DNA of 64,000 nt from Bugula neritina (lineage: Eukaryota > Animalia > Bryozoa): the NCBI GenBank assembly GCA_964035545.1, contig OZ037765.1:16802995-16866994 (forward strand), read 5' to 3'. The notes under the pieces are model-generated. The model saw nothing but the letters and a program-made list of their open reading frames with translations, did not search any database and was not told where the DNA came from. The translations under genes were made by a program, and so were the position numbers. How positions within the stretch are numbered: the stretch's first letter is position 1; the number at the start of each line of letters is the position of its first letter. Of this stretch, positions 1 through 64,000 are shown piece by piece.

Positions 1-3000
1 TTTCTGGATATGAGTAATTTCTTATCTGCTACACAACAACCAAGCAAAAAGAAACCAATTATGATGAAAACTGAATAGACACACCATGCTAGAATATTAA
101 CCAAAGAATATTCTTTGAAAATCACTCAATTGAAGTTATTCTCTGCCATTGTGAGTGAGCACATAAATATAAATTTAGCCAGATTAACACAACATCTAAA
201 ATAGTAGGTGGTTAATGAAAACTCGATGAATATGGAAACAAAAAGTTTAGCTCCTAAAGTGCCCACAAGTCAACATAATGCAAATAGGAGATAGGCATAA
301 GCCAGCAATTCACCTTGAATTGTCTCAGATCCCATATTTTAATCAGACCATCATCTCCGCCACTAACTATAAATGGTTCATTAGCATTCCAACTAATAAC
401 GTTAATGTCTCTATTATGAGCTTCCTCGCACGTAAGCATACATGCTTTTGATGGGGTTGCCCTTGTGTCCCATATTCTTATACTTTTGTCCACAGAACAA
501 GATGCAAACACCTAGCAACATATAAATAGCCGTACACTCACAGATAAAGTCCAAAACATATTTTTCGTTATTACCTACAATATAGGCTGACTAATTACAA
601 TCTAAAGTTTACATTTATAAAATTGTATATAATCTCAGATGAAGGCAAGTGTACTTACAGTTGGTTCATTTGGTGACCACTGAATGTCCTCCACAGACGC
701 TGTGTGGCCTGTATAAGGTCGCTGATCAACACTCCAACTAGACGAGTCTTGTGGCTTCCACAGGTGTATATTCTTATTACAATCACCAGTCAGTAGCTGA
801 CCTATAATGAGACAACTTCCCTAATAATCACAGCGAGCAACAGAAAGAAAAGGGGGGGGGGGGTCTGAAAGTAAAAGATAAAAAAATTATTTTTAACATT
901 ATCTTTGACTACAGGTAAAATTTAAAATCATGGTGTGCAAGTTTAGGGTATAAAGTGGTTGCTTGAAGAGTTAAGGATGAACAATGAATAACATTTACCT
1001 GAAACTAACGGGCACCAGTCCATAGCAAAACCCTCCACTCCATGCCCGCTGAATGAAAATAATGGCTGTATGCTTTGTGTTTTACTAGTTTTATGATATT
1101 CAGCTAGAGCTTTGGGATCATTCACAACATCCAATGGTGTTGACAAGTCCCACACATACACGACTCCTCGTTCACACCAACTCGCTGCAACCGTCTTTCC
1201 ACCAATTTGACAAGCCTACCACATGCACATTTGAGACCATCAATATCAACAAGTTTAGGGTTGACACTAGTAAATCTCTTAACTCAAATAAAAAAGGGCT
1301 AGATACCTAAAGAACTACCAATACACACTTGTGCCCACACCTATACAAAAATAGCACAAACTCTGGGCGAGATCATCATGGTGTAATGAGTATGAGAACT
1401 GGGAAGTAATAAATTCCGCTTAGCATGAACATAGCACTGCTCTCAGAAGTCAAATAAATAAATATTTAATTCGCAACTTTAATACTTACAACTTTTTATT
1501 TATTAAATACTGCAATATTGAAAAACTGAAACTATAACATATCTCCACTACGTAACCCTGCAATATTGCATGTATAGAGAAACGTTGCAGATTTTATATA
1601 AAAACTGCACTACCTGTATATGAAAGCTTGTGATACTTCCAATAATGTAATCAAAACTTTGATTGGAGAGCATAACATACACCAAGTTAACTCAATCATG
1701 ATTGGATGGTACTAATAATGTGAAGGGAAATTTGGCTAGCATTATTATTCATTAGTTGCCATAATTTATGTTAAAATTTTTCTACATGTGGGTTATTGGA
1801 GAAGATTAATACAAGGCACCCTACCCTAATTCTGTTTACTGCTCCTAGAGGATGCTTAATTGGTGCAGCAGACAAGACTGGTAATTGAGAGTTGTCTTCT
1901 TCATTGTCACTTTCATCATCACTTCCTCCACTCTCCTCATTTGACTTCTCCTTGAACCTACGAACATGTAAAAATACAACTTATAGAAATCAAATTAAAT
2001 TGTGTCAGCTATTATGAGCAGCTATGATGGTAGTAACTGCAAATATAGCAGACAATTATTTAACCTGCTACATTTATAGAATGCAGATAAAATAAAAAGG
2101 GAACAAGCATATTCAACAATATAGACAATATAGATAACTTTATCGCTTTAGTTATATTTTGTGTCATATTTGACCAACATTAATATATGCAAGACCTACT
2201 GTGTGTCACTCAACACAGAAATTAATTTAATTTTGCAGGTAAAAATTTAGGTTGTCCCACATCACAATTGTTCACTCTACTCCCTAATACAACTGCAATC
2301 AAACCTGTGCATGTTGGATAACTTCATGACTATAACACTGTTAGTGTGACTTCGCTCAGCCTGAGTACCACAAACAAGATAGCTGGTCATAGGATACGAC
2401 TCTCTGCCTACCCCTAGTGGGTCTTCCAACACATCAAAGCTTAAGCAAGGAGCACCTTTAATAAAAGGACAAAACACAGTTTTTATCACAGGCTATCAAA
2501 CAACTCCAAATAACTAACTCATAGATTTTCTAGGGGGGAATAGGAAGAAAAATATAATGAAAAATTAATATAGTCTGAGTGAAACTTGCATATTGACTAA
2601 AATTATATTTTTTGGAACAAATCATTAACAAAAGATATGTACCGAATCATGCCCTACTTTGATTCAATTACATTGTATTAATTACCAACACAGAATACTT
2701 CTTTCTCAGAGTGTACGTACTATACTACCTGTGTGTGCTTTGTGTAACATTATATAGGCAGACTCATCTACGACCAGTTTGCTAGGTCGACAATCATCTT
2801 CCTCATCAACTTTTGATCCTGGCAAATAGACCCTAGAAGATCCGCTATCACCGATCATGCCCTAAAATTTGCATGCCCAATCTTGAAGTTCACGTGACAA
2901 CTACTATATGCTCATAAAAGCTAGCAAGAAAATAGCCCTAATAAAGTATTTTCCTACCTCTTCTTCTTGATTGCTAATGTCTTGGACTATTTCATCACTG

Positions 3001-3065
3001 TCACTTTCTTCACAGCCGATATCCATATCCTCTTCACTGCTGGTCCTATCATCATACTCATCCAT
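1..3065 (-). CDS. GRWD1: Glutamate-rich WD repeat protein 1 (Rrb1/GRWD1), 5' part; gene continues beyond left edge
   Basis: Phase-consistent GT-AG exons 3065-2958, 2861-2729, 2455-2305, 1957-1825, 1215-999, 801-659, 511-314, 28-<1. Acidic N-terminus, then VYLPG...[72 protein letters not shown]...[16 protein letters not shown], all typical of GRWD1. Confidence 0.93.
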
Positions 3066-4364
3066 TGTAGTAGAACCTACAAGTTCCTGTAGAGTGTAAT
3101 TCAATCTGATGAATTAGGAGAGCATGGAACATGAATTGGAAATGACTACTAAGTAAAACCATTATACTATGCCGACATATTTTTTAGTCTGGTATAACAG
3201 AAAATAAACTACAGATGCGTGCAGGGCTACCGCTGTCTCAACAATGAACTCTAGAACAGCAAATTTGAAACTACTATTTATTGCAAATTTTAATGTTCGC
3301 GGGCTTTGCTCATTTATAAAAACAGAATAAAATTACAAAATATTTCCATGTACCAGTAGAATAACAAAAATTTTAAAGCACTCACTAAACTTTTTGATAT
3401 TTTTAATGTTTAAATATAGTATTTAGACATAATTTTCAATAATTGACTAATATAAACCTTGCACGTTAATCAAATGACACCTATGTCTGAAATATAAAAC
3501 AGGTGACAAAATAATTTGCAAGACAATGGTTTTAACAATGTAAACAGTGTGTTTCTTGAAAGTGTTTTATAACTCATGCTGGGAATTAGACTTGATGGTT
3601 TTAATGTGGTATAGGAGCAATTTTGACAAATATAATACAAATACAATGGGGAACATGTTAATCTTACTAGAGCTAATACTAATAAGCTGAAAGCCTTATT
3701 ACTACTAAGCCACAATTATTAGCTGTGTCAGTTGTAGCATTTACTTGGCCTAAATGTGATACCTACACTGACACTAGACATGACTCTGACTAATAGTAAT
3801 AACTATAGACATGGGATAATCATAGTGATAGTGATAGACTTATACTTGAAGTAAATCTATAAAATTAAATGTAATCATCCTAATTAGTATATTTAATCAG
3901 TATATACAAATTGAATTATAATAATATTATATTATATTATTAAATTTGCAATGATTTTTTAAATATATTTATAATTTTATTATAATTATTATTATTATTA
4001 TATAAATATTAAATATAATTAAAATTTATAAACAGTAAACATTTACAGTGTTTATAAAATTAAATATAACAAAAAATAAAAGCATTAGCCATGAAATTTA
4101 ATTATTATGATTATATTATCATTATGATTATGAATATCAATATGATTATCATTAAGTTTAACTCGACTGTGAAATAATAATAAACATTATGACTATCAAA
4201 ATCATAATGATAAAAACTAAACTTAAACTTAAAGTTCGGTTAAAGTTAAACGATAATCATAAACCTGATACTATCAGTGATAGTCATAGTCATAGTGATT
4301 AAAAGGCACAGTGACACTGACTGAGTCAGAGTGTGACACTGACAGTCTCAGTGCTAGAAATCAC

Positions 4365-42989: not shown

Positions 42990-43443
42990 TGCTCTTCAAG
43001 TTTCAATCGGGAAGTCTTTTAAAATGTCTAGTCACAAATAAAGTTAAAAGTTTTTCAAATAGACTTCTAGGAAGTTTTTACCGGTGCAATAGTTAAACTC
43101 GGACTATAAAGAGCTCTTTTGATCAGCAGACATTGGTTATGTGCGTTTTAGTGTTGAACCAATGATTTTCAGATCATTAGGACAATCTAAAACTAACATT
43201 GTACAGCAAAACACAACTCCATACAACTTCATGCAGTAATTGACAACAGAATTATGCAAACCCTTTGATATCTAGAGTTTAAAGCTATACAAATCATGAA
43301 GTTTGTCTTCGATTATTTTTGTAATCAATGGTAAAAGGGGAAATTCCCTTACCCCCCTCTTCATGATCGCAACATTGTGATAGCTGAACCCGTAGCTTGT
43401 CTTAGAGATAGATGGTTTTGGTAAAACCAAGTCCAAAACTTTT
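42990..43443. promoter_or_regulatory. Probable bidirectional promoter Src(-)/NF-kB(+) with a kB site; NF-kB non-coding first exon ends ~43443
   Basis: CpG-containing complex sequence between two low-complexity islands; GGGAAATTCCC at 43338-43348; donor TTT|GTGAGT at 43444. Confidence 0.55.
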
Positions 43444-46272: not shown

Positions 46273-49200
46273 ATGGCGAGTAGTAACTTTGATTTGACAT
46301 GGTCCTCACAATTACTTGATGACCGTTTGAGCTATGTGGTAAGTTTTTTGTCAACTTTTTATGTAAACGTTCATATATATATATATATATCTTCAGACCG
46401 GTTCAGGGTGTACGTTCAAACAATTTCATTTTATAATTTTGGGCAAACATGTTTTGAATTGGTTTGAGATTTCTAATAACTTACTATTGCCAGCTTTCAA
46501 GACCGAAGTATTTTTAAATCAATAGTAATTATTGCTAACTTTTATTGCATTTTTACCATATAACTGTATTTGTATCTTATAAGCCTCCTCCTCTCTCTCT
46601 CCCTCCCTTCCTCTCACTCTCACTCTCTCTCTCCCTCCCCCTCCCCCTCTCTCTCTCTCCCTCCCTTCCTCTCACTCTCACTCTCCCTCCCCCTCCCCCT
46701 CTCTCTCTCTCCCTCCCTTCCTCTCACTCTCACTCTCTCTCTCCCTCCCCCTCCCCCTCTCTCTCTCTCCCTCCCTTCCTCTCACTCTCTCTCTCCCTCC
46801 CCCTCCCTCTCTCTTCCCTCCATCCTCACTTCCCCTCTTTCTCTCTCTCACTCTCTCGGTTATGAACTGATGACTCGAGGATATTATTCATTTACATGGT
46901 CATTTTATACCTTATAGGGATCCTGGCCAGTTAAGGTTTTCTCAATTCAGTAAGGCTGTCAGATTACTAGTCATATCTAACAAGAAACCATAATAGTCCT
47001 AATCATCGTAATTACTGTCCATATTTTATGTAATTTAAGCAACTGATGGTGAGGTTGTTAGTGTTGCTACTCCATAACAGAGTAGTAATACCAACAACTA
47101 TAGGTGAAAGGAATAAAAAAAACTGAAAGGTATATCATTATTATGCATATCCTGTACTATTGATTAATTTGAGCGGCAGCTCAGTTTAGAATAATGCCAT
47201 TGTTCACTTGGACGAAAAAACAACAAAACAAGAGATACATTAGTTTCTGTGAATAAAATATGTTGGAGTGTTCTGGAAACTTTGCTTGGTTAAACTTGAA
47301 CCGTTGATTAATAACCTAGACACACTTATTCAAATAGCTTAGCTAGCAAAAGTTAGCAAATAAAATGTTAGTAGATGCCCCATTAGCAGCAATATTAAAT
47401 TTTCAAATAAATTTTATGCTGAAATTTAATTAGGTAAAACTTGGCAGTAACAAATACTGTCTTTTTTCTCTAATCGGTTTGGAAAAAGCCAATAATTATC
47501 CAGGGTATTTGAAATGATGAATGCATAATTGACTCTCGTTGTTTTTACTTTTAGCCCAGTGAAACACCAGTTTCTCAAGGGTATGGTGCGGATCCATTTC
47601 CACAGACATCCTACTACCCCAGTCCTGATAACTCTGCTAACTCGCACTCACCACACCTACCCTCTGTCCAGTATCCCACCTACACAAGCATTGCGCAGGC
47701 ACTGCCCAACTTGAGCTCTAATATAGTGCATGAGGTTTGTTTCTCTTAGCTAACTAAACTTTATCTTTTTTTCTTGACTGCCTTTGAGTTTTTCAACTGA
47801 AGCTATAAACAAGTAGTGCCTAGATATGGTTGGTTATGCTTTACTAGAGATTTTTCATGATGGAGATATACTTGGTGTCTATTACTACTATTCATTTCTT
47901 TAACCTTATTGACGAGGTGTTGTGTACTTTAGGTGCTGACAGGTGACATAAACAACTCTTTAGAGAGAATGTCTTTGGAACAGCAGAATTCTATTCTGGA
48001 ACCAAGCTCATTGTATGCCAGTAGTATGAACGGTCTAGGTGGACTCAATGGCATTGATGGTATTAATGGCATTGATGGTCTTAATGGCATCGATGGTCTC
48101 CATGGTATTGATGGTATCAATGGTATTGGTGGCATCAATGGAATCAATGGTCTCAATGGTAGTGTTGGAAGTGGTGCAAGTAGTGGGAGCAATGAAGAGG
48201 AAAGTTATGCAGGCTCTCCTTATTCTAACGTGACTGGTTAGTATCTGCGTGACTGATTAATATATGCCTTATAGATATATTCTTCCTTTTAACGCAATAT
48301 TGTGCAAGATAAATGAAGCTCTTTTTACTTAGACAAATAATGCTACAGCAAGTAGCAACTGTATGGAACATGAGACAAAATAATCAAGCTCTGCTAAGGT
48401 GCCACTCAAATGAAGAGGCTTGTAATGCATATGGTGAGGTAGCAGTGAATAGACCTTGTCTGTTACAGTGGAATGCACTAGAAAGCATATATCCTATAAT
48501 CAATACAGTGCCAGTGCGTGAATAGTTCAGCCATTGCATAATTGATTCAGGGGAAGTTGCATTAATGAAGGGATTTCCCCTCCATAGTTGGCTCTGTTAT
48601 GCTGTATAAAGGCACACAAGTGCACCCATCTTTTGTACATGTTCAACAGTGGAACATAGTATTCATGAACATGATGGAATATTTTGATATTTAATGTGAA
48701 TGCCAAACAAGTGAAGCTTAAGCGTAGGGCCACACCTGGCATATTTTCGCAGGCGAAAATTCGCACAAGTAGCAAAAGGTGTCTACTGTACAAGTTGAGA
48801 ATGCTGAATGACAAGTGCGAATATTTTCTGTCGTCGTTACCTAATTGGATGGTAGTTATTTTCTATTAATTTAGTGCTACATTCCACTAAATTGTGTTTT
48901 ATTGAAATCGAGTGAGATTTAAAAATGAAAATTTTATTTATCTCGCACATGTAGCCATAGAAGCAAGGGGAGCAGTAAAGTTAGACCCAAATATTAAAGT
49001 ATTAGCTAGTAGTTTTTTGCTTTCACTGACAAAACGTAGTGTGTGATAGGTCACTCCCACAGTGTATTTTCTCAAATTCGAATTCGCACAATAACTGTAA
49101 CTATATGTAATTCACTAAAGCCTTACCTATTGGGATATGTAAATGTATTAAACTTTATCTTATCAAATCATAATAAAAAGGCATCATAAATTTGCATTTA

Positions 49201-52200: not shown

Positions 52201-55200
52201 ATGTATAGTATAATATGTATATAATATGTATAGTATAATATGTATATAGTATGTATAGTATAATATGTATATAGTATGTATAGTATAATATGTATATAGT
52301 ATGTATAGTATAATATGTATATAGTATGTATAGTATAATATGTATATAGTATGTATAGTATAATATGTATATAGTATGTATAGTATAATATGTATATAGT
52401 ATTTATAGTATAATATGTATATATTATTTATAGTATAGTATGTATAGTACAGTATGTATAGTATAATATGTATATATTATAGTATATATGGCATAGGGTA
52501 TATAAGCAACACAATAACGATGGTGCTGTTAGCATGTGTCCGGTTGTAGAACAAACAAGTGCTGCCGAACTTCGCATATGCAGAGTGTCGTCTGCTGCAG
52601 CACCAGTCACTGGAGGCACTCAGGAAATCTTTCTTCTCTGTGAGAAAGTTACAAAGGGTGAGCTAACCTTCCTCATACTAGTAATAGAATATAATACTAC
52701 AGTGGTTATGTAGACTGTACACCTACTGTTCCACCATAATATAAATAGCTTGATTTGTTGATAATAAAGATAAAATGTTTGTAGATGATATAAAGGTGAA
52801 ATTCAAGCATGGTGAATGGGAAGCAGATGGTAAATTTCAAGGAGCAGATGTTCATTTTCAGGTTGGTTTCGTGATTGTGTTCTAGGTTATTCCTTTCACC
52901 TACACTCTGTTCTCTATAGTATTACTTAGTAATTTATCTTTTGACATAATGATAAAAGTCTTTTTTGTGTGTAGTTCGCTATCGTGCTCATAGCACCTCC
53001 CTACAAAGATCTGCATATTCAGAAGGAAGTAACTGTAGATCTCAAGCTCTTCAGGCCGTCTACAGGCACCTATAGCAAGCCCCTCCCTTTCACCTACTAC
53101 CCTACTCCATCAGGTAATGCTTGCTCTACTTGCCCCACCTAGTAACTTGCTGTACTTGTGTGCTGCTTATCTGGTGTGTAGTATATAGTGTGTGCTATTT
53201 TCATCATTGATGGATATGAAAATAACACTCACAGAAAAGTATCATTAATATAATAGTGTGTTTACAGTTTGCCTTATGTGTAGATAACTCTGAATTATAA
53301 AGCATTCATGTCGGTGATAACCAAATAATGCGCTTTCACCTGTAAGTTATAAATTAGAATAAATTAGAATTAGATCCTGTAAGTTGTAATGATGGTAGGA
53401 TAAAATTTTCACATGAATATTGCATAAATAAAATTATGATTCATGGAAATTATTTGTGAAATATAAACTGGCGCAAGCCACTCTCTCACATGTGTATATT
53501 TCTGATGCTACAGTGGATGAGGGGCCAAGGAAGAGAAAACGAACTGATGGATATGGTCCTTCAGATTTACCTGGTTACCCGCCTTATCCGCCATTCGGAG
53601 GGCCCCCTTTCAGCGATGGACCTTCAAGTAAGTGTTAATATATACATTGCTCTAGTATGCATGGTGTGTTTTTGGTCAGTAGGTTGTTTTGTATTTGATG
53701 TTATGAGCAGAGGCCTCATAAAATCTCCTGGAAAAGTTGTTGCCTTGTTGAATGGAGTTTCATGTTTACTGCTATAACTTAAACTGAGCAAGCAACCTGT
53801 CAAACCATTGTACCAGAATCTGTTGATAAACTATCATTAAAGGCCAGCAGGATAGACTAACAATAATATATTTGCTTGAGTTTGTCATCAGTTTATGTTC
53901 ACAGTTACAATAAGCCATAATTGTGACATAATGATATAAGGCTTAACCCAGAAAGCTAAATTTTAGAAGTTTTTTAACCAGGAAAATCAGACATGCTTAA
54001 TGTGCAGGCGGGTAGAAAGCTGAATATATCTTATGTACTCTTCAATGTTAAAATGGCTTCTCAACTGGGTTGAGCATGATTATGATATTGTGGTGGTAGA
54101 CTAAAAGTTTGTGACTATATTTATGTGTAGTAGAACTTATATGTTCAGACCAGGGTTGGGGTCAATTGCATATGAATGTAATTAATTACAATTTCAATTA
54201 CATGAGAATTTGTCAATTATAATTACAATTACAGTTGAAATAAATGTAATTAATTACAATTACAATTACACACAATGTAATTAATTACAATTACAATTAC
54301 TTTTGTTTTCACAAGAGACAAATAGAAGTTATATAATCCCACTTCTGGGATCCAACTATCTGGGGCAATTTTGACAACTGAAACCTTCTTTGTTCTCAAC
54401 AGTAACGAATACCGTGATAAATACGACATTAAATTAATTTGAACTTTTTTTAAGAGTAGGCAAGGCAGGAAACATATGAATTTTACAAAATTTAAAAATT
54501 TGAAGTAATTATGTAATTATACAGTAATTGTAAAATTCAATTACATTAGCAATGTAATTAATTACAATTACATTTTTATATATCAATTACAAATTACATT
54601 CAATTACTCGAAAAAATGTAATTAATTACAACCAATTACAATTATCCCAACTCTAGTTCAGACCTGGTTATTATCTTTATGGTGTACTTTAAAGTAGGAT
54701 AGAAATTGCCAACCTCAATGAAATTATTATTCTGTAAAAGCACTACATTTTTGCTTATCATTATGGATGTTATTACAACTGGGAGTATGTCTTTTAGATG
54801 GTGGTGGTGGTGGTGGCCAGGGTGAACATGGAGGCTCTTCATACAGCCCATATGGAGGGTATCAGTACTCTAGGACTGTCCCTGGTATGTTTTATACTTA
54901 ATTTCTAGAAAGTTTCTTGGTAGTATATAGATACTCTATTGCTAGTATATAGACAGTCTATTGCTAGTATATAGATAGTCTATTGGTGGTATATAGATAG
55001 TCTACTGGTAGTATATAGACAGTCTATTGCTAGTATATAGACGGTCTATTGCTAGTATATAGATAGTCTATTGATGGTATAGAGATAGTCTATTGATGGT
55101 ATATAGACACTCTATTGTTAGTATATAGACAGTCTATTGGTAGTATATAGATAGTCTATTGATGGTATATAGACACTCTATTGTTAGTATATAGACAGTC

Positions 55201-57037
55201 TATTGGTAGTATATAGATAGTCTATTGATGGTATATAGACGGTCTATTGCTAGTATATAGATAGTCTATTGATGGTATATAGATAGTCTACTGGTAGTAT
55301 ATAGACAGTCTATTGCTAGTATATAGACGGTCTATTGCTAGTATATAGATAGTCTATTGATGGTATATAGACACTCTATTGTTAGTATATAGACAGTCTA
55401 TTGGTAGTATATAGATAGTCTATTGATGGTATATAGACAGCCTATTGGTAATATATATAATTGACTTTCCCTCTATCAAGTTGTCATGACAGTCTGTGAA
55501 AACCTTTATAGAAAATCAATGAGTTGTTTATTATATCCTATAGTTTGCTCAGCTCCAGGTCAGAAAGTGAACACTAACTCTCTAGGCACACTTTGCCATA
55601 ACGTCAACGGTACCGGCAAATGGCAGCCATTTTTTGAAAAGGCCGAGCTGACCGTAAAGTTGCGTTTATACCTCTGCTGAAAAAAGTACCGAGTTTAAAT
55701 TAATAATGCTTGTCCGGGTACCCCTTTATAGTCAAACTGAAACTCGTTGAAATCATATTGATGTGGTTGCTCACTTTCTGAAATTGAAATTTGACTCGCA
55801 TAATAGCTATTTGATGCCCTTTGTAAACGTCGTGAATTAGTGAAGCGAACAGCATAAAAGCGATAATTGAGAAGGCGTAGGCTATATAATTATAACCGTA
55901 TAAGTATGTTGTCTAATCGCCAAAGTAATAACTAAATAACGATGTTTACAAGGAGTTATTACTTCTAATCTAAAATTTGCCGATTAAGTTTTCACAGTAC
56001 AAAAATTTTTACGAGTGGCTTTTACAATGCAATGCAACTTGGTGAAATTTCAACCCGGCCAAATTGAAATTCTGACCGAAAATCGTGAAGGTATAAAGGC
56101 AACTTCAGACATTACGGTAGGCCGAGGTTCAAATACTGCTTGATTCAAAAAGTAACATCAGGCTCCTATTTCACAAGGAGACATCTACGTCAACTCGTTG
56201 GATATAAATGTCTAGTGAAGTATCATAGACGTTATCCAATAGCGGGCTTTGAGAAATTCAGCTTGGACGCCAAACTGGCCAACATTTGACAGTACCGTCA
56301 ACGTTACGGCAAAGTGTGAATCCGGTCTAATATTTTTACTAAAAAGAAACCCATGTCACTTGCATCTGTTTACTGTGGCAGCGTCCATGTTACAAGAAAA
56401 AACTTTTTTTGCATTTGCATTTAAGTTCAGAGTGTTTGTAGTTATTTAGTTGTGCTGCAGAGTCTGAATAATTTGTGGTGAATCTATTGAAATAAACCAG
56501 TCAAACTTTAATGGCAAGATGTTGCAAAATCACACATACTTTTGAAATAGATCTTTTGATATAGCAGCACTCACTTGAATTGCTTGGACTCGGTGAAGTG
56601 TGCCTTATCCTAATGACAAATTACCGAAGTTTTACTTAGAACTTAGTTATGCTCAACCTTCCTGGTCTGCTTTATTTCCGCAGTTAGAATGAAATTTATA
56701 GCCTTCGGTGTTTGTACTACTGCAACTTCTGAAATATTTTGTTAATATTTTAAAATTCCATGAGTTTCTTATAAAACAAGCTTGCTTGAGTATACAACAT
56801 TCAAACAGTCTGTAGATGACAGCTTAGTATATATGAATATTTTAATACTATATAAGTAAATAAATGAAGTGCGCCAGGGATTCCTTAATGTCTTCTTTGC
56901 TTGTGTCCAAGTTGATGTAGTTCGCATTTAGGCTGCATTTGCTTTGCTCTTGTCTCCATAAATTCTTCTTTGAGCTCAATTTTCACTCTTAATTTCTTCC
57001 TCCAGTCCAAGGTTGTCGCTTCATCACCATTTCCTCT

Positions 57038-57072
<35 letters not shown>

Positions 57073-57139
57073 GTACTACTACTAGTAGTAGTAGTAGTAC
57101 TACTACTACTGCTGCTACTACTACTACTACTACTACTAG

Positions 57140-57189
<50 letters not shown>

Positions 57190-57190
57190 G

Positions 57191-57252
<62 letters not shown>

Positions 57253-57253
57253 G

Positions 57254-57306
<53 letters not shown>

Positions 57307-57694
57307 GTACTGCTACTACTACTACTACTACTACTGCTACTGCTGCTGCTGCTGCTACTGCTACTACTACTACTACTACCGCTACTACCGCTACTACCAC
57401 TGCTACCGCTGCTGCCGCTGCTGCTGCTGCTACTGCTACTGCTACTACTACTGCTACCGCTACCACTACCACTACTACTACTGCTAGTGCTACTACTACT
57501 ACTACTACTACTACTACTGCTACTACTACTGCTACTACTACTGCTACCGCTACCACTACCACTGCTACTGCTACTGCTACTGCTACTACTACTGCTACTG
57601 CTACCGCTACCACTACTACTACTACTACTACTACTGCTAGTGCTACTAATACTACTACTACTGCTACTAGTGCTACTAGTTCTGCTACTACTGT

Positions 57695-57734
<40 letters not shown>

Positions 57735-57855
57735 GCTACTGCTAGTGCTACTAATACTACTACTACTGCTACTAGTGCTACTAGTTCTGCTACTACTGCT
57801 ACTACTGCTACTACCACTGCTACTACTACTACTGCTACTACTACTACTGCTACTA

Positions 57856-57917
<62 letters not shown>

Positions 57918-58038
57918 GCTAGTGCTACTAATACTACTACTACTGCTACTAGTGCTACTAGTTCTGCTACTACTGCTACTACTACTGCTACTACCACTGC
58001 TACTACTACTACTGCTACTACTACTACTACTGCTACTA

Positions 58039-58076
<38 letters not shown>

Positions 58077-58278
58077 GCTACTACTACTGCTACTACTACT
58101 ACTACTGCTACTACTACTACTACTGCTACTAGTGCTACTAGTTCTACTACTACTACTACAGCTACTGCTAGTGCTACTACTGCTACTACCACTGCTACTA
58201 CTACTACTACTGCTACTACTACCACTGCTACTACTACTACTGCTACTACTACTACTACTGCTACTACTACTGCTACTG

Positions 58279-58332
<54 letters not shown>

Positions 58333-61300
58333 GTACTACTACCACCACTACTACTACTACTGGTGAGTCTAAATAACTGACACCAGTTTTTGAAAGACGA
58401 TTTCAATAGTCTTGTTTTTCACATTTGATATTGAGGGGGCAGTGATACTCGTATATCTGCTTGATCAGTTTTAAAATAAATGTGAACAAGTTTGCTATGG
58501 CTATCTTACATTTCATAAACAAGGGGATTTTCTGTTTGATTCTTTATCCTCTTATGTTATCACGCAGCATTTCTTTCCTGACCAGTAACTATGCATGATT
58601 TGCAATCCATACAAATATGTTTATCTAAGCTCGTGCTTGGCAATAATTAAAGGAGGTGGGATGATATGGCAGTTGAGGGGATTCCCCACATGCTACTAAA
58701 ATCCCCTTATTTGAACTTGTTCTATTTAGCCTATCAACTAATCAAACGCTCGCTAGAACTTGCCTAGGCAACGTATTCATTTAGTGTGGACAGTTTTGTT
58801 GAACCTTTAAAAATCTCCTCAATCACAGTCATGTCTGCTGCAGGTAATTTACATTTACTTTAAAGTAAAGCTAGCTTTCATTTTGCTATTGAATTTTATG
58901 TGTCCAGATATTTTCAGTTTGGCTTGAGTCGTGTTGATTTTCAGTGAGTTTTGTCTGCTTTTTCTCATTTAAAGTATTGAAGTCAGTTAAGATACTAGTT
59001 TTTCAACATGATGATTTTAAACTACTGAAACTTTAGTTAAAATATATTTTTAGCAGCTTTTTACAGTAACTATTCCCATTAAGTTATTCCATTAATCAAT
59101 TAAATAATTATTCACGGTTTAGTTGTAATAATGAAATAAACTCAAATAATGTTTCACAGTTGAACATTGCCAATTGGTCATCTATAGAATTAGATATATG
59201 GTTGGTTTTTGGTTGCTTCTCAAAATTATGAAAATGGGGTAGCAACTTGATTTCTATTTTTCAAAAACCTGTGCCTTGTGTTTTTATGTTCATCTTAATA
59301 ACAATGATTAAAGCTGCATTAGCTTCAGCCAACTACAAGATGTTTTTCAACAGGTTGTTTTGTGTGACATTAAGTAACCCAAATAAATGTTTTAGCTTCA
59401 ATATTAAGGTTTGGGTAATGAAATTTCACAGTTTAAAAAAGTAAAATGCAATTAAAACATGTGGCAGTTCGGCCTTAATTTTTGTTATAATTAATTAGTT
59501 TTTTATTTTGATTCTAGCTGTAAGTAATAAGCTAAATTATACCAAATGATAAGGAAACTTCTTTTGATTGCATCTAGTATTTATAAACTCAGTGGCCATT
59601 GATAATCAAACCTCCGAATGCTCGTGTGAGTGAAGTTTACTCTACAATGAGCTACTAACGTCTAATTTTCAAAATTCCCAATAAATTTATCATCACAATG
59701 ACTTTTTCTCACATAAATTCTGCCCTAACTATTTATGTATACCCGAAATGATAGGCATCTATTTTTATCCCTGCCTAAAACTAGCATATGTATCCCATCA
59801 CATGCAAAGGCATCTGGGTTTGACAGAGCTCTTGTAATAGTAGCTATATTAGCATACTCAAGTCTCCAACATCGAAAGGCAGTATTGGAGTTGAGGAATA
59901 GTTAGATAATTTTTGCGTAGGTTGGCCATGTAGTTGATCAAAATATTAGCAATTTGGTTTTTTTAATTTAAGTTTTTTGAAGTCTAATTCATCTCATTAC
60001 ATACCTTTTTTCTGCTCAGAAACTTGAACCTAAGCAAACAGTTTACCCATAGGAAGGTTTACTATAAGTATTCTGAAAATGTTATGCTTTGGGTAGGGTC
60101 GGTGAAATTAGTTTATTCCAACGTAACCAATAAATATTTCTGCAACAATTGTTACTATAATATCTTAGTTAGTGGTAATACTCTGTAGATATATAACTAT
60201 AACGTTATAAATGTTGTTACAGTTGCACACGGTCAGTCCTCCCAACCTGAACCTATGGATGAAGATAAACCTATCAATTTGACGAAATCAAAAGACAGCC
60301 ATGTGCCAGCTACAGTTGAAACAATAGATGAAGTGGAATCAGATCACGCCCCCATTAATCTCATCAAGAGTGAGGTTGCTGATCCCGAGTCTACATCAGC
60401 TGTGGAGACTGCTAAGACATCAGAAGTGAAAAAAGAGCCTGCAGTAGAAGAGCCTGCAGTGGAAGAGCCTGCAGTGGAAGAGCCTGGAGCTAAGAGCGAG
60501 GAAGAAGATTTGGAGACAGATCACATGCCTGAACCCCGGCTAAGAAAAGATTTAAGCGTGAAAACTGCCGATCTCCTGCCGACCAAGACGGTTTGTATAT
60601 CTCTAACTAAACTCGTTTAGTTAACTTTGTGCACGTGTCAACAGCTGTGAGTTTAAGGGACAAGTTCTGATGTTGTGAAACTTCATTTTAGGTCAGAGGG
60701 GGTGAGCGCAAGAAACCAAGCAACGTAAAGTCACGGGATATGAATGTGGTAAATACAATAGAAGGGGAGTTAGAGAGTGAAAAATCTAAAGGTAAGTTGT
60801 TACAGAATCTTATCTCCTGATGGGACAATATATTTAGATCAGGCATTTTCCTCTTCCCTATCAACAGTTGCGTTACACCAAGCACTTTACTAATTGGGGA
60901 AAGGGGGATTTTCCAAAACCCGTAATGATTTTCATATCCATCATAACAAGCCTATGCCTATTATTCCATCAAGTGTTGTACATTAACCTCACATCAATCA
61001 ATTGTATTGTAATTACAATGCATGATTACAATTTTGTCCTTAATTTTTCATTAGTCTAAATTTGTTGCATTGTTTAAAGTACATGTAAAAACATCTAGGA
61101 TACAATGTGTTGTTTATAGTGATTTTTCTCTGCAGGCTTCCAGTGGTATAAAATATTTGCACTCAACAATCTTTCAATTATGAACACTGTTGGAATAATA
61201 GTGCATCAAGTTCAAGTTTTGCCGGTATTAGACGCAGCTGGTGTATGTTTTGCTGTAGCTTTCTTTCTTTTAATCAAAAAGTGTTGTATAATTTGGTGAT

Positions 61301-64000
61301 TCAGGTCCTAAATTGTGAAATACTTGAATAAATATTTAGCAGCCATAATTGAGCAACAGTAAAGTTCTACTTACTGCTTTGCTTGTAAACTTACCATTCA
61401 ACAAAAATAGCAGCTTTCTCATTAGAGTAAGAACTCTAAAATATGTAACTGTCATGACTTTCCATGGACTGATCAGTCCCAACACTAGCAGCCCATAACA
61501 TTGGAAAGGTCAGAGTTTAAACTCACTGTCTACTTGGTCATTCATATGTCAATCAATTTATGGATAAAAGCTGGTGGTAAATCAGGGCTAAGTGAACATA
61601 GCCAAGGTTCTTAACATCTGGTCATCACATAAGGGGGGAGGGTAACTACACAGGTTCAAACCAATTGAGTCATAAAACTATTTTCAGCTGCAGTAATGCT
61701 GGCTGGGATCAATTATTAGAAAGTTGGTTTTACCGTTTTTGTTGCCATGTAAAGGGCGGATGTCTACCATCAGCCATATATGCATATCTACATGAATAGT
61801 GCACTGTGTTGTAGTCCAGGGTCTGCAGTACCACGTATCTCTGTGTGAAGACATGGTTATTGATGCTGTAATGAACTACGCATCCACCGGCAATGCTCTC
61901 TATTTTGTATCCCAGTTCCGTCATTTCCTCACAGTGAAAGATGAATTCGGAGACAAGTGAGTGTTGGAACAACTAGCTCCCTGTGTTGTGGTTGTCCAGT
62001 TATAACTCCTAGAATATAGTCGTGGGTTGAGGTGTGTTGTATACATAAACTTTCTGGTGAATGAGGTTAGATTGAGAGCCTACGTATATTTTTAGCTCAA
62101 TACACATGGCTGTTATCAACGGACAACACCGGGCTTTAAAAGACATGTTGACTATGTGTGCTGCCACCAAAGCATTCTCAGTTATAAACCATCTGAATGA
62201 CAGACACGAGGTGAGGGTTTTATCTGTTTAAGCTTTTATAATTTAAGAGAAACAACTCTAGAAAGTTGTGTCCACGTTAATAGTATGTAGCTTTCCAGCT
62301 ATTGTAATCAACTAATACTCAAGGCATATTATTTATAAGGAAAATTTTTGAACAGTATATCAGTGCGAGTATATCATAACTGTTGAATGAGGTGAGGTGA
62401 TGACCATCAGGAAAAGTTCTAATGATAGTGGCTCCTGTATCTCTAGCTGTTAGTCTGGTTTATCGTAGAAATTTTACTTCATATAATATTGTCAAGGGTT
62501 TGTCTAGTAAAATCGTTTTATTCTGCAGACGCCTCTGCATTTAGCTGTAATGCTCGGTGACACTGAAATGGTGAAGGTTTTGCTGAGTCACAATGCAGAC
62601 CCATCAGTTAAAGACTATTCAGGCAATAACTGCTTTCACACAGCTGCCAAGAAAGGCAATTACAAAGTGACAGACCTCTTGTGTCGGTGGCTGAAATCAT
62701 CATCTCATGGCAGTTCAGCTGTTAACGATTTCAACTATGAAGGTATGTTACTAAGTAATTGATAATTGATTCTTAGAATTTATTGTTATTATATGAACTG
62801 CTTTCTCTATTGATTGTGGTTTTGAATTGTTGAATCATGAAAATTTAAAAACATAAGCTGAGTATACTAGTTGTCTTAATTCCTTGCTTCAAAAGTTTTT
62901 TTGAAGACTATAAGTAAAGCTCTTGATAATTATATCTAAAAGTTGGTTATTTTTAGGGTAGGTGAAGTGTTCCTAATAGTAAAATTATCCTTCTCCCTTT
63001 TAGGAACACTGGCTAGAACTTAAAATAACCTGAACAGTTTTTGGTGGTTGACCTGTTACAATAAATGTAGTATATAATATACCTGGTTTATAGGTTACAC
63101 ATCTCTTCACAAAGCTGTCTTTGGTGACAGTGTTGACTGCATTCGGGCACTGGTTAGTGTGGGGGCGGATGTGAACATGCCTGACAGAACTACTGGCAGG
63201 ACAGCACTGCACCATTCTGTACTCAGGTGTAACATCCACACCACTGCTGAGCTCGTTCTTCATGTAAGTCTGTTGCTCTGTAGATAGTACGTGTGGAGTA
63301 TTGGCTCTTTTCTCGAGCTCAATGTACTGTGGTATACGCACTCACCTTTCATTGTTCACAAATTCAACTTCAACTAGCAACCTGTATGTACAATGATGCT
63401 GATATAATGACTAAATATAGGTTTTACTTTTGATGTATTTCAAAAGCTGACGCAGTTTCTAAATACTTTTGGTTTGTTGTTACAGCCCTGCATAGATGTG
63501 GACCCTCAAGCATATGATGGTAACACTCCACTTCACCTCGCTGTATCTATTGGCAAACCTGATTTGTGTCGCATTCTTATTAAATCGGGAGCCAACCCAC
63601 TTTTGGAAAACCGAGATTTTTCAGATGAAGAAGTTGTTGGGAAGAATGCTTATGATCTGTGTGGTACAGATGATGTTGTAAGTCAGCTTGCCTTGCTTGT
63701 CTTCATATACATACCTCTAACCAAATATATTCAATTATTTTCCCTTTATTTTTTGAGGTGCCAAATAATAACCTTGAATGATTATCTTCTATTTATAGTT
63801 GCTGTCTACAATAAAATCAGCTTCGGATAAAGACAGTAGATCACTGCTTCTAGTTGGCTCAATTGACAGCCTTCCCAAAAACACAACTAAACAGCTGTCA
63901 ACGCTGTTGGATGATAGCCAAGATTGGAAGCGCCTTGCTGAAAACTTTGGGTTATCTTCACTTGTCGATTTCATGGAGAGAAGTGGCACCCCAACCCTGT
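46273..64000 (+). CDS. NFKB1: NF-kB p105/p100/Relish-class precursor (RHD-IPT-NLS-GRR-linker-7 ANK-death domain); continues beyond right edge
   Basis: Phase-consistent exons 46273-46338, 47555-47734, 47933-48236, 49734-49918, 50646-50815, 51021-51100, 51381-51557, 52550-52657, 52785-52861, 52975-53113, 53514-53627, 54798-54884, 60223-60590, 60692-60791, 61815-61956, 62096-62210, 62529-62742, 63094-63263, 63486-63677, 63799->64000 (~1063 codons). Motifs: ILEQP..GYRFRYEVEG..HGGL.G, FGNLTIL, LRICRVS, EIFLLCEKV.KDDIKVKF, FAIV..PPY, NLS RKRKR, GGGGGG, NYASTG...RHFLTVKDEFGD, TPLHLAV ankyrins, death domain DWKRLAENFGL. The symbol denotes the subfamily; one-to-one orthology was not tested. Confidence 0.95.
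46585..46857. repeat. Polypyrimidine/polypurine (CT-rich) tandem repeat in NF-kB intron
   Basis: Almost pure C/T tract with a recurring ~50-56 bp unit (CTCTCCCTCCCTTCCTCTCACTCTCAC...CCCTCCCCCTCCCCC). Confidence 0.9.
48570..48579. promoter_or_regulatory. kB consensus site in NF-kB intron
   Basis: GGGATTTCCC matches GGGRNWYYCC. Confidence 0.4.
49370..49706. repeat. ~18-bp minisatellite (GTGAGTAAGTGTGTATRT)n
   Basis: About 18 degenerate copies, ending ~27 nt before the acceptor at 49733. Confidence 0.92.
51590..52485. repeat. 25-bp AT-rich minisatellite (TAGTATAATATGTATATAGTATGTA)n
   Basis: Near-perfect tandem array filling most of the intron between the RHD and IPT exons. Confidence 0.95.
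54151..54655. mobile_element. Non-autonomous hAT-superfamily MITE
   Basis: Perfect 8-bp TSD GTTCAGAC (54143-54150, 54656-54663); imperfect TIRs CAGGGTTGGGGTCAATTG / CAATTATCCCAACTCTA; subterminal AATTAC and GTAATTAATTAC repeats. Confidence 0.85.
54919..55450. repeat. 22-bp palindrome-containing minisatellite (GCTAGTATATAGACAGTCTATT)n
   Basis: About 24 head-to-tail copies with no spacers, each with an ATAGAC-A-GTCTAT-type internal palindrome. Confidence 0.92.
55584..56328. mobile_element. Non-autonomous TIR DNA transposon (possibly PIF/Harbinger-type)
   Basis: ~43-bp imperfect inverted repeats: CACACTTTGCCATAACGTCAACGGTACCGGCAAATG (from 55587) vs CATTTGACAGTACCGTCAACGTTACGGCAAAGTGTG (to 56318); CpG-rich interior; left end appears partly deleted. 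Confidence 0.65.
57039..58362. repeat. ~1.3-kb (ACT)n/(GCT)n trinucleotide expansion in NF-kB intron
   Basis: Pure triplet array with higher-order duplicated blocks (GCTAGTGCTACTAATACT...AGTTCT). It explains the four long homopolymeric ORFs in the ORF track. Confidence 0.95.
58523..58843 (+). promoter_or_regulatory. Intronic kB-site cluster and candidate alternative first exon (ATG TCT GCT GCA G|GTAATT)
   Basis: GGGGATTTTC 58523-58532, GGGGATTCCCC 58677-58687, reverse GGGGATTTT 58698-58706, X-box-like CTTGCCTAGGCAAC 58759-58772, ATG at 58831, donor at 58844 in phase 1 matching the acceptor at 60222. Confidence 0.55.
60903..60914. promoter_or_regulatory. kB consensus site in the intron preceding the first ankyrin exon
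   Basis: GGGGGATTTTCC. Confidence 0.45.

Follow-up and report, generated by a model that had tools for sequence, protein, structure and literature searches.

A gene of the p105 type encodes an activator and its inhibitor as parts of a single polypeptide. The mouse gene nfkb1 reportedly also has a separate mRNA, described by Inoue et al. in 1992, whose 70-kDa product, IkB-gamma, is the C-terminal half of p105. Here the single p105/p100-type NF-kB gene of the bryozoan Bugula neritina is described. It lies in a stretch of 64,000 nucleotides of genomic DNA, from here on called the window. The intron between its Rel half and its ankyrin half holds a second, very short 5' exon, and three kB-type motifs stand upstream of it. 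This alternative 5' exon is real. It yields an IkB-gamma-like mRNA that most likely starts at an internal promoter. By analogy with known cases, the gene very probably also makes a stand-alone ankyrin inhibitor.

Like mouse IkB-gamma, the Bugula transcript is a second mRNA of a p105-type gene that has none of the Rel exons, and that carries the linker, all the ankyrins and the death domain in the p105 frame. In both, it is the intron following the glycine-rich region (GRR) that holds the alternative 5' end. This likeness is known here from the junction and the frame; the start site and the inhibitor function of the Bugula product are predicted. Unlike the mouse case, the host is a bryozoan, the 5' exon adds an ATG and four codons of its own, and a cluster of p50-type kB motifs adjoins it. 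To our knowledge, no equivalent kB cluster is known for the IkB-gamma start. The name IkB-gamma itself is found in a citation of Moorthy & Ghosh 2003 in PMC4666095.

The Relish gene of the mosquito Aedes aegypti is comparable in that a single invertebrate gene of the Relish/p105 class yields an ankyrin-only form. This gene is also immune-inducible. Shin et al. are said to have reported, in PNAS in 2002, full-length, Rel-only and ankyrin-only (IkB-type) forms. PMC4742911, citing that paper, likewise has one inducible Relish gene give rise to three isoforms by alternative splicing. Unlike this arthropod, Bugula is a host of lophotrochozoan grade, and of its forms the ankyrin-only junction alone has been seen; a Rel-only form is possible.

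Negative feedback from NF-kB to IkB-alpha or cactus is well known, as is autoregulation of NFKB1 and NFKB2 through kB sites. As in the IkB-alpha and cactus loops, the Bugula kB motifs stand beside the putative start of an inhibitor-encoding transcript. Unlike there, a single gene with one set of ankyrin exons would encode both the inhibitor and the activator. Literature searches returned no NF-kB work on Bugula or Bryozoa, and nothing directly usable on the IkB-gamma promoter or on the mosquito IkB-type isoform.

The junction and its reading frame

A preliminary description of this DNA, made from its letters, had pointed to ATG TCT GCT GCA G|GTAATT at 58831-58843 as a start codon followed by a phase-1 GT donor that joins in frame to the exon at 60223. 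It had named a 58843-60223 junction in RNA as the check to be made.

The stretch was matched in three public runs. These are X3, the probable source of the DNA, and X1 and X2, which are RNA-Seq runs of one sample from a 2016 'symbiont metagenome'. The comparison used the assembled contigs of these runs, over window positions 58400-64000 (5,601 letters), a range that begins beyond the 54884 side and the 1.3-kb repeat. Seven GT..AG introns of the NF-kB gene are missing from the contigs of X1 and X2, which match exons alone, so these contigs are derived from RNA.

One X1 contig is confined to the bin 58774-58960. It ends at 58843, exactly at the proposed donor, and continues with the 13 nt TTGCACACAGTCA. 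All 13 letters are the start of exon 60223 as found in a sister species; the window's own exon 60223 begins TTGCACACGGTCA, and a continuation into the genome would have read GTAATT. The RNA contains the 58843>60223 junction.

The frame across this junction was checked by translation and is as proposed. The GRR exon and the mini-exon both end in a phase-1 G, and either gives GTT (Val) with exon 60223. Translated exon by exon from the ATG at 58831, the frame is open through 60223-60590 and all downstream exons into the death domain, and it includes no Rel domain. The preliminary description had counted seven ankyrins in this product. The death domain and the missing Rel homology domain stand as described; the ankyrin count here is at least six.

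The alternative exon has a length of about 70 nt or less. Its coding part, which supplies the ATG and four codons, is 13 nt. No other ATG occurs within 58700-58830, and there is an in-frame TAG at 58765. The sequence around the ATG and the donor, ATGTCTGCTGCAGGTAA, is found exactly in the sister species (L003, 3801-3817). An ATG and four codons that are conserved, with no ATG upstream, fit a start codon.

The same contigs also bear on the full-length mRNA. Contigs of the shared exon in both X1 and X2 begin at 60222, sharing only a G with the upstream sequence. The last three letters are CAG in the mini-exon and in the unspliced intron, and CTG in the GRR exon of both species. A break after a lone G needs an upstream partner that ends in a base other than A followed by G, and the GRR exon (...CTG) fits. 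This suggests that full-length and short mRNAs probably coexist. The bin of the mini-exon has a value of 337 vs a contig depth of 3065 for the shared exon, contig depth being a poor measure.

No RNA depth was found in the X1 and X2 contigs over 58400-58773, including the bin 58587-58773. The seven partly aligned X1 contigs are matched by seven single loose ends. These account for all seven contigs, which means that the mini-exon contig is without a reported 5' overhang.

The sister species was found with the peptide of the linker exon. This search led to one protein cluster, P0001, which is encoded on the JGI metagenome contigs L003 and L004 and on the Logan contig L005. L003 is collinear with window positions 53413-63727. 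Along this alignment the introns are some 85-88% identical; the full range of intron identity is 85-92%, and 0.8-0.95 per 60 nt. At 28 of 28 sites the variant letters of X1 are those of L003, so the RNA comes from the L003 species. The latter presumably belongs, like the animal of the window, to the B. neritina sibling-species complex (PMC4183541).

Conservation in a relative had been another expectation, and L003 retains all three GGGGATT motifs at nearly the same spacing, as well as the ATG and the donor. Indels of 15 and 10 nt between window and L003 fall between the motifs, and all 31 motif bases are unchanged. At an identity of 86-90% the chance of this is about 0.01-0.04, which may be read as modest evidence of constraint.

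Wider searches added no further species. Word-based protein searches with the linker exon and one ankyrin exon returned the same sister species only, and an exhaustive search of representative proteins returned P0001 and low-complexity matches only. An exact-pattern scan for the 5' exon in metagenome contigs, where near-identical records may be omitted, found none.

The kB motif cluster

The preliminary description had placed three kB-type sites within 190 bp, and they are present at 58523-58706. The three GGGGATT-type motifs span 184 bp and stand around 70-250 bp upstream of the alternative exon, or 70-310 bp by a wider count.

Motif 2, GGGGATTCCCC, had been called a perfect palindrome. It is indeed an inverted repeat, of GGGGA and TCCCC around a central T. 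Its reverse complement is GGGGAATCCCC, hence it is not strictly self-complementary. It had also been equated with the kB site of major histocompatibility complex (MHC) class I (H-2K); all 11 bp agree. For the p52 homodimer that site is the one of tightest binding, and p50 is described as preferring it (10.1101/2022.05.03.490500).

The cluster is rare. Of the six GGGGATT sequences in the window, three belong to the cluster. A triplet within 200 bp arose in none of 300 Markov simulations, and under a Poisson model 1e-4 to 1e-3 triplets would be expected in each window. Motifs 2 and 3 together form a convergent pair, GGGGATT-N(1-30)-AATCCCC. Such pairs occur five times in the 216-Mb genome vs two for the control. 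No second genomic copy of the motif-cluster stretch was found; it is unique sequence.

Motif 2 by itself is common, with 219 copies genome-wide vs 6 for the reversed control. Thirteen of 20 sampled copies belong to one repeat family of about 425 bp with inverted ends of around 30 bp, resembling a miniature inverted-repeat transposable element (MITE). In the 611-bp stretches around GGGGATTCCCC that were sampled, the family copies are L007, L009, L012-L015, L017-L020, L022, L023 and L025. Going by these sequences, p50-type kB motifs may have been carried about the genome by a mobile element. That the cluster is itself part of this repeat was considered and rejected: the flanks differ at the window site, and the stretch is single-copy.

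The strict kB consensus GGGRNWYYCC is also enriched in the window as a whole. There are 12 matches where 0.91 would be expected, and in 100 shuffles no sequence gave as many. Among the sites are 24868, 35773, 43338, 48570 and 60905. Palindromic ones are found at 43338, near the upstream Src/NF-kB promoter region, and at 48570, within the 5' portion of the NF-kB gene. At 60905 the GGGGATT form is not retained in the sister species.

The gene's own Rel domain is of a type that could read these motifs. In p52, the four consecutive Gs are contacted by Arg52, Arg54 and His62 together with Lys221; Glu58 holds the G-contacting residues in place and also makes a base-specific contact (10.1101/2022.05.03.490500). 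The recognition loop of the Bugula domain, RFRYEVEGKAHGG, aligns with that of p50, RFRYVCEGPSHGG, and the Arg, Arg, Glu and His positions are kept. This makes the loop p50/p52-like with its His (RxRYxxEGxxH), unlike the Rel/Dorsal class with Ala. The GGGGA half-site of the candidate motifs would thus match the p50/p52-type domain that the gene encodes. Inducibility by NF-kB is proposed from the motifs and this p50-type loop.

One other Rel homology gene is present in the genome, at C9:4685740-4688386 (L026). It is of the Rel/Dorsal type, with Ala replacing His in its loop RFRYECEGRFAGS. Its protein would be the likely heterodimer partner of the p105-type product.

A probable internal promoter and its rivals

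The best explanation overall, to which we assign a probability of roughly 55%, is that the second 5' exon inside the 5.3-kb intron is the first exon of an internal promoter, and that its IkB-gamma-like mRNA serves kB-driven negative feedback. The mini-exon is spliced to exon 60223 in the same phase as the GRR exon, which gives an mRNA for the whole C-terminal half without the DNA-binding domain. The candidate kB motifs upstream would be read by a Rel domain of the p50/p52 type. Active NF-kB would then raise the output of free ankyrin inhibitor from its own locus.

Several points weigh against this. The contigs cannot map a transcript start. The 3' overhang of the mini-exon contig is 13 nt vs the roughly 30 expected, and contig ends may be truncated; with ends that say so little, the missing 5' overhang is weak evidence. 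The RNA derives from the sister species and not from the animal of the window, and it is a single sample. That species is also close, so conservation has little power. In the protein libraries searched there was no transcript-derived protein of the NF-kB gene, full-length or short. The purine at -3 before the mini-exon ATG is not conserved. The Inr-like TTCATTT of the preliminary description is present at 58776-58782. The sequence that contains it, TTCATTTAG|TG, is as good a 3' splice site as it is an initiator; with its boundary at 58785 it resembles real acceptors of the gene, for example CTTCATTTTAG|G at 60692. Given the (ACT)n tract just upstream, the true promoter could lie near 56.9 kb, and the motif cluster would then be in the outron. 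Lastly, the mammalian p52 homodimer on GGGGATTCCCC binds tightly yet does not activate (10.1101/2022.05.03.490500), so binding alone would not prove induction.

This double nature of TTCATTTAG opens two other ways to arrive at the junction. The same IkB-only mRNA might acquire its 5' end by spliced-leader trans-splicing at 58785 (TTCATTTAG|TG) or at 58794. Its primary transcript would then come from another internal promoter, upstream of the (ACT)n tract and near 56.9 kb, or from the gene's main promoter, and the kB cluster, lying in the outron, would be a downstream enhancer if anything. In favor of this, the sister species keeps the acceptor-like sequence, an exon from 58785 agrees with a contig that starts at or after 58774, and the (ACT)n tract is preceded by a well conserved block. 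Trans-splicing would be expected to leave around 20 leader letters as a 5' overhang of the contig; none are listed, and RNA coverage is absent from 58400-58773. The TATA-like TATATAAG at about 56850 was rejected as a promoter element because it is not conserved: the sister species has TATGTAAG. Trans-splicing is judged unlikely. Conserved acceptor-like sequences would equally suit an internal cassette exon, 58785-58843 or 58794-58843, between the GRR exon and exon 60223. In that position the frame stops after VWTVLLNL, eight codons into the exon, and the frameshift would yield a p50-like Rel-only protein or a target of nonsense-mediated decay. Insects and shrimp have Rel-only short isoforms of Relish-type genes (PMC4742911). 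With a cassette exon, the contig should show as many as 30 letters from the GRR exon in a 5' overhang, and again none are listed; the exact conservation of the ATG and four codons, with no ATG upstream, fits a start codon. A cassette exon is judged quite unlikely. A 15-nt in-frame version, either as a cassette microexon or as a trans-splice acceptor at the AG of 58827-58828, had been the alternative of the preliminary description. It falls away for the RNA-source species, which has ACC there (CACACCCATG).

The remaining rivals concern the motifs. The cluster might be an intronic enhancer for the main promoter, as in the autoregulation of NFKB1 and NFKB2, and the mini-exon transcript a minor by-product. 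The enrichment of GGGRNWYYCC across the locus, at 43338, 48570 and 60905 among other places, points in that direction. Against this stand the conserved donor of the exon and its conserved ATG in the right phase, and the depth of the mini-exon contig is not trivial, as far as that poor measure goes. As the whole explanation an enhancer is decidedly unlikely; as a part it is compatible with the internal promoter, and not exclusive of it. That the motifs are a chance cluster without a regulatory role is hardly credible. The many genomic copies of GGGGATTCCCC would favor it, but most sampled copies belong to a repeat family that leaves out the window site. The paired and tripled arrangements are rare, and the sister species, with introns that differ by 8-15%, has kept every motif base.

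If the internal promoter is real, the feedback module would be compact: a putative promoter of around 330 bp and a coding exon of 13 nt. How free IkB proteins came out of p105-type genes, or were fused into them, is a standing question for the evolution of innate immunity. In mouse and in a mosquito, ankyrin-only intragenic transcripts have been described, and a bryozoan case would suggest a trick that is old or easily re-invented. Bryozoa is a phylum with almost no immune-gene work.

A more tentative idea is that a conserved intragenic promoter is wired to sites for the gene's own p50-type homodimer, and that this p105 gene is a living intermediate between fused NF-kB/IkB and separate genes. 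If true, one locus would deliver both the activator and a free inhibitor, in a ratio set by the activity of the pathway. It would also show how stand-alone IkB genes could arise from, or merge into, p105-type genes. The symbiont of B. neritina makes bryostatin, an activator of PKC and NF-kB in mammals. The feedback, if true, may matter for the host of such a symbiont.

Layout of the locus

The gene is of the p105/p100 type in its full order of domains: Rel homology domain, nuclear localization signal (NLS), glycine-rich region, ankyrin repeats and death domain. The locus runs from 49.7 kb to past 64 kb. Pfam finds PF00554 (RHD_DNA_bind, E 8e-10) and PF16179 (RHD_dimer, E 1e-9) in separate exons at 49.7-53.1 kb. 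The best relatives of the Rel domain among solved structures are p50/p105 first and p52/p100 second. The Rel and ankyrin halves are separated by an intron of 5,338 nt. The coordinates are collected in Table 1.

Table 1. Features of the NF-kB locus, in window coordinates; ORF, open reading frame; TRF, Tandem Repeats Finder
Feature	Position	Strand	Remarks
NLS PRKRKR	exon ORF 53456-53638
Glycine-rich (GRR) exon, final exon of the Rel half	54798..54884	+	ends ...CCCTG|GTATGT, phase-1 donor; contains GGGGGGQGEHGG
(ACT)n tract, 6-bp-periodic, 1.3 kb	57039..58361	.	TRF; lies in the large intron, a short way upstream of the motif cluster
kB-type motif 1 GGGGATTTTC	58523..58532	+	identical in L003 and L004
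kB motif 2 GGGGATTCCCC	58677..58687	.	two GGGGA half-sites; core kept in the sister species, extended there to GGGGGGATTCCCCC
kB-type motif 3 GGGGATTTTA	58697..58706	- (plus strand TAAAATCCCC)	identical in L003 and L004
Alternative 5' exon	58774..58843	+	5' end at or after 58774 in the RNA contig; ATG 58831; donor G|GTAATT after 58843
TTCATTTAG	58776..58784	+	initiator-like TCATTT (A at 58779) or 3' splice-site-like (exon start 58785); fully conserved
Intron of the alternative transcript	58844..60222	+	GT...AG
First shared exon, acidic linker with PAVEE repeats	60223..60590	+	same phase from either upstream exon
Downstream exons	60692-60791, 61815-61956, 62096-62210, 62529-62742, 63094-63263, 63486-63677, 63799 onward	+	RNA-contig joints, frame, Pfam

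In the downstream exons at least six ankyrin repeats are encoded, and the death domain begins there; it runs past the window into L002. The ankyrin domain is spread over six exons, and Pfam Ank families match exons 62529-63677. For the death domain, Pfam gives two half-matches below threshold, with E of 0.025 and 0.052. These cover profile positions 2-37 and 59-85 and fall in consecutive exons.

Two introns of the ankyrin half contain RNA contigs of low depth, at 61205-61578 (depths 21-31) and at 63324-63496 (depths 59-96), where neighbouring exons have around 1,900-3,500. These may be retained introns or unannotated exons.

The (ACT)n tract is shorter in the sister species, at around 780 bp. 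It is preceded by a 180-bp block, 56860-57040, that is 96% identical to the sister species in the alignment, and no coding signal was found in this block. The region 56860-58361 may mark another transcript start, sense or antisense.

In the linker exon, the 15-nt repeat encoding PAVEE, at 60433-60509, differs between the window and L003 by an in-frame expansion of 30 nt. By this comparison the coding microsatellite appears to evolve fast.

The end of the GRR exon is kept in the sister species, with an in-frame insertion of 3 nt. Reading through its donor (54885-54901) adds GMFYT, five codons, and then a stop; this sequence is conserved in the sister species. An mRNA that retains the intron at 54884, or is polyadenylated within it, would encode a ready-made p50-like protein.

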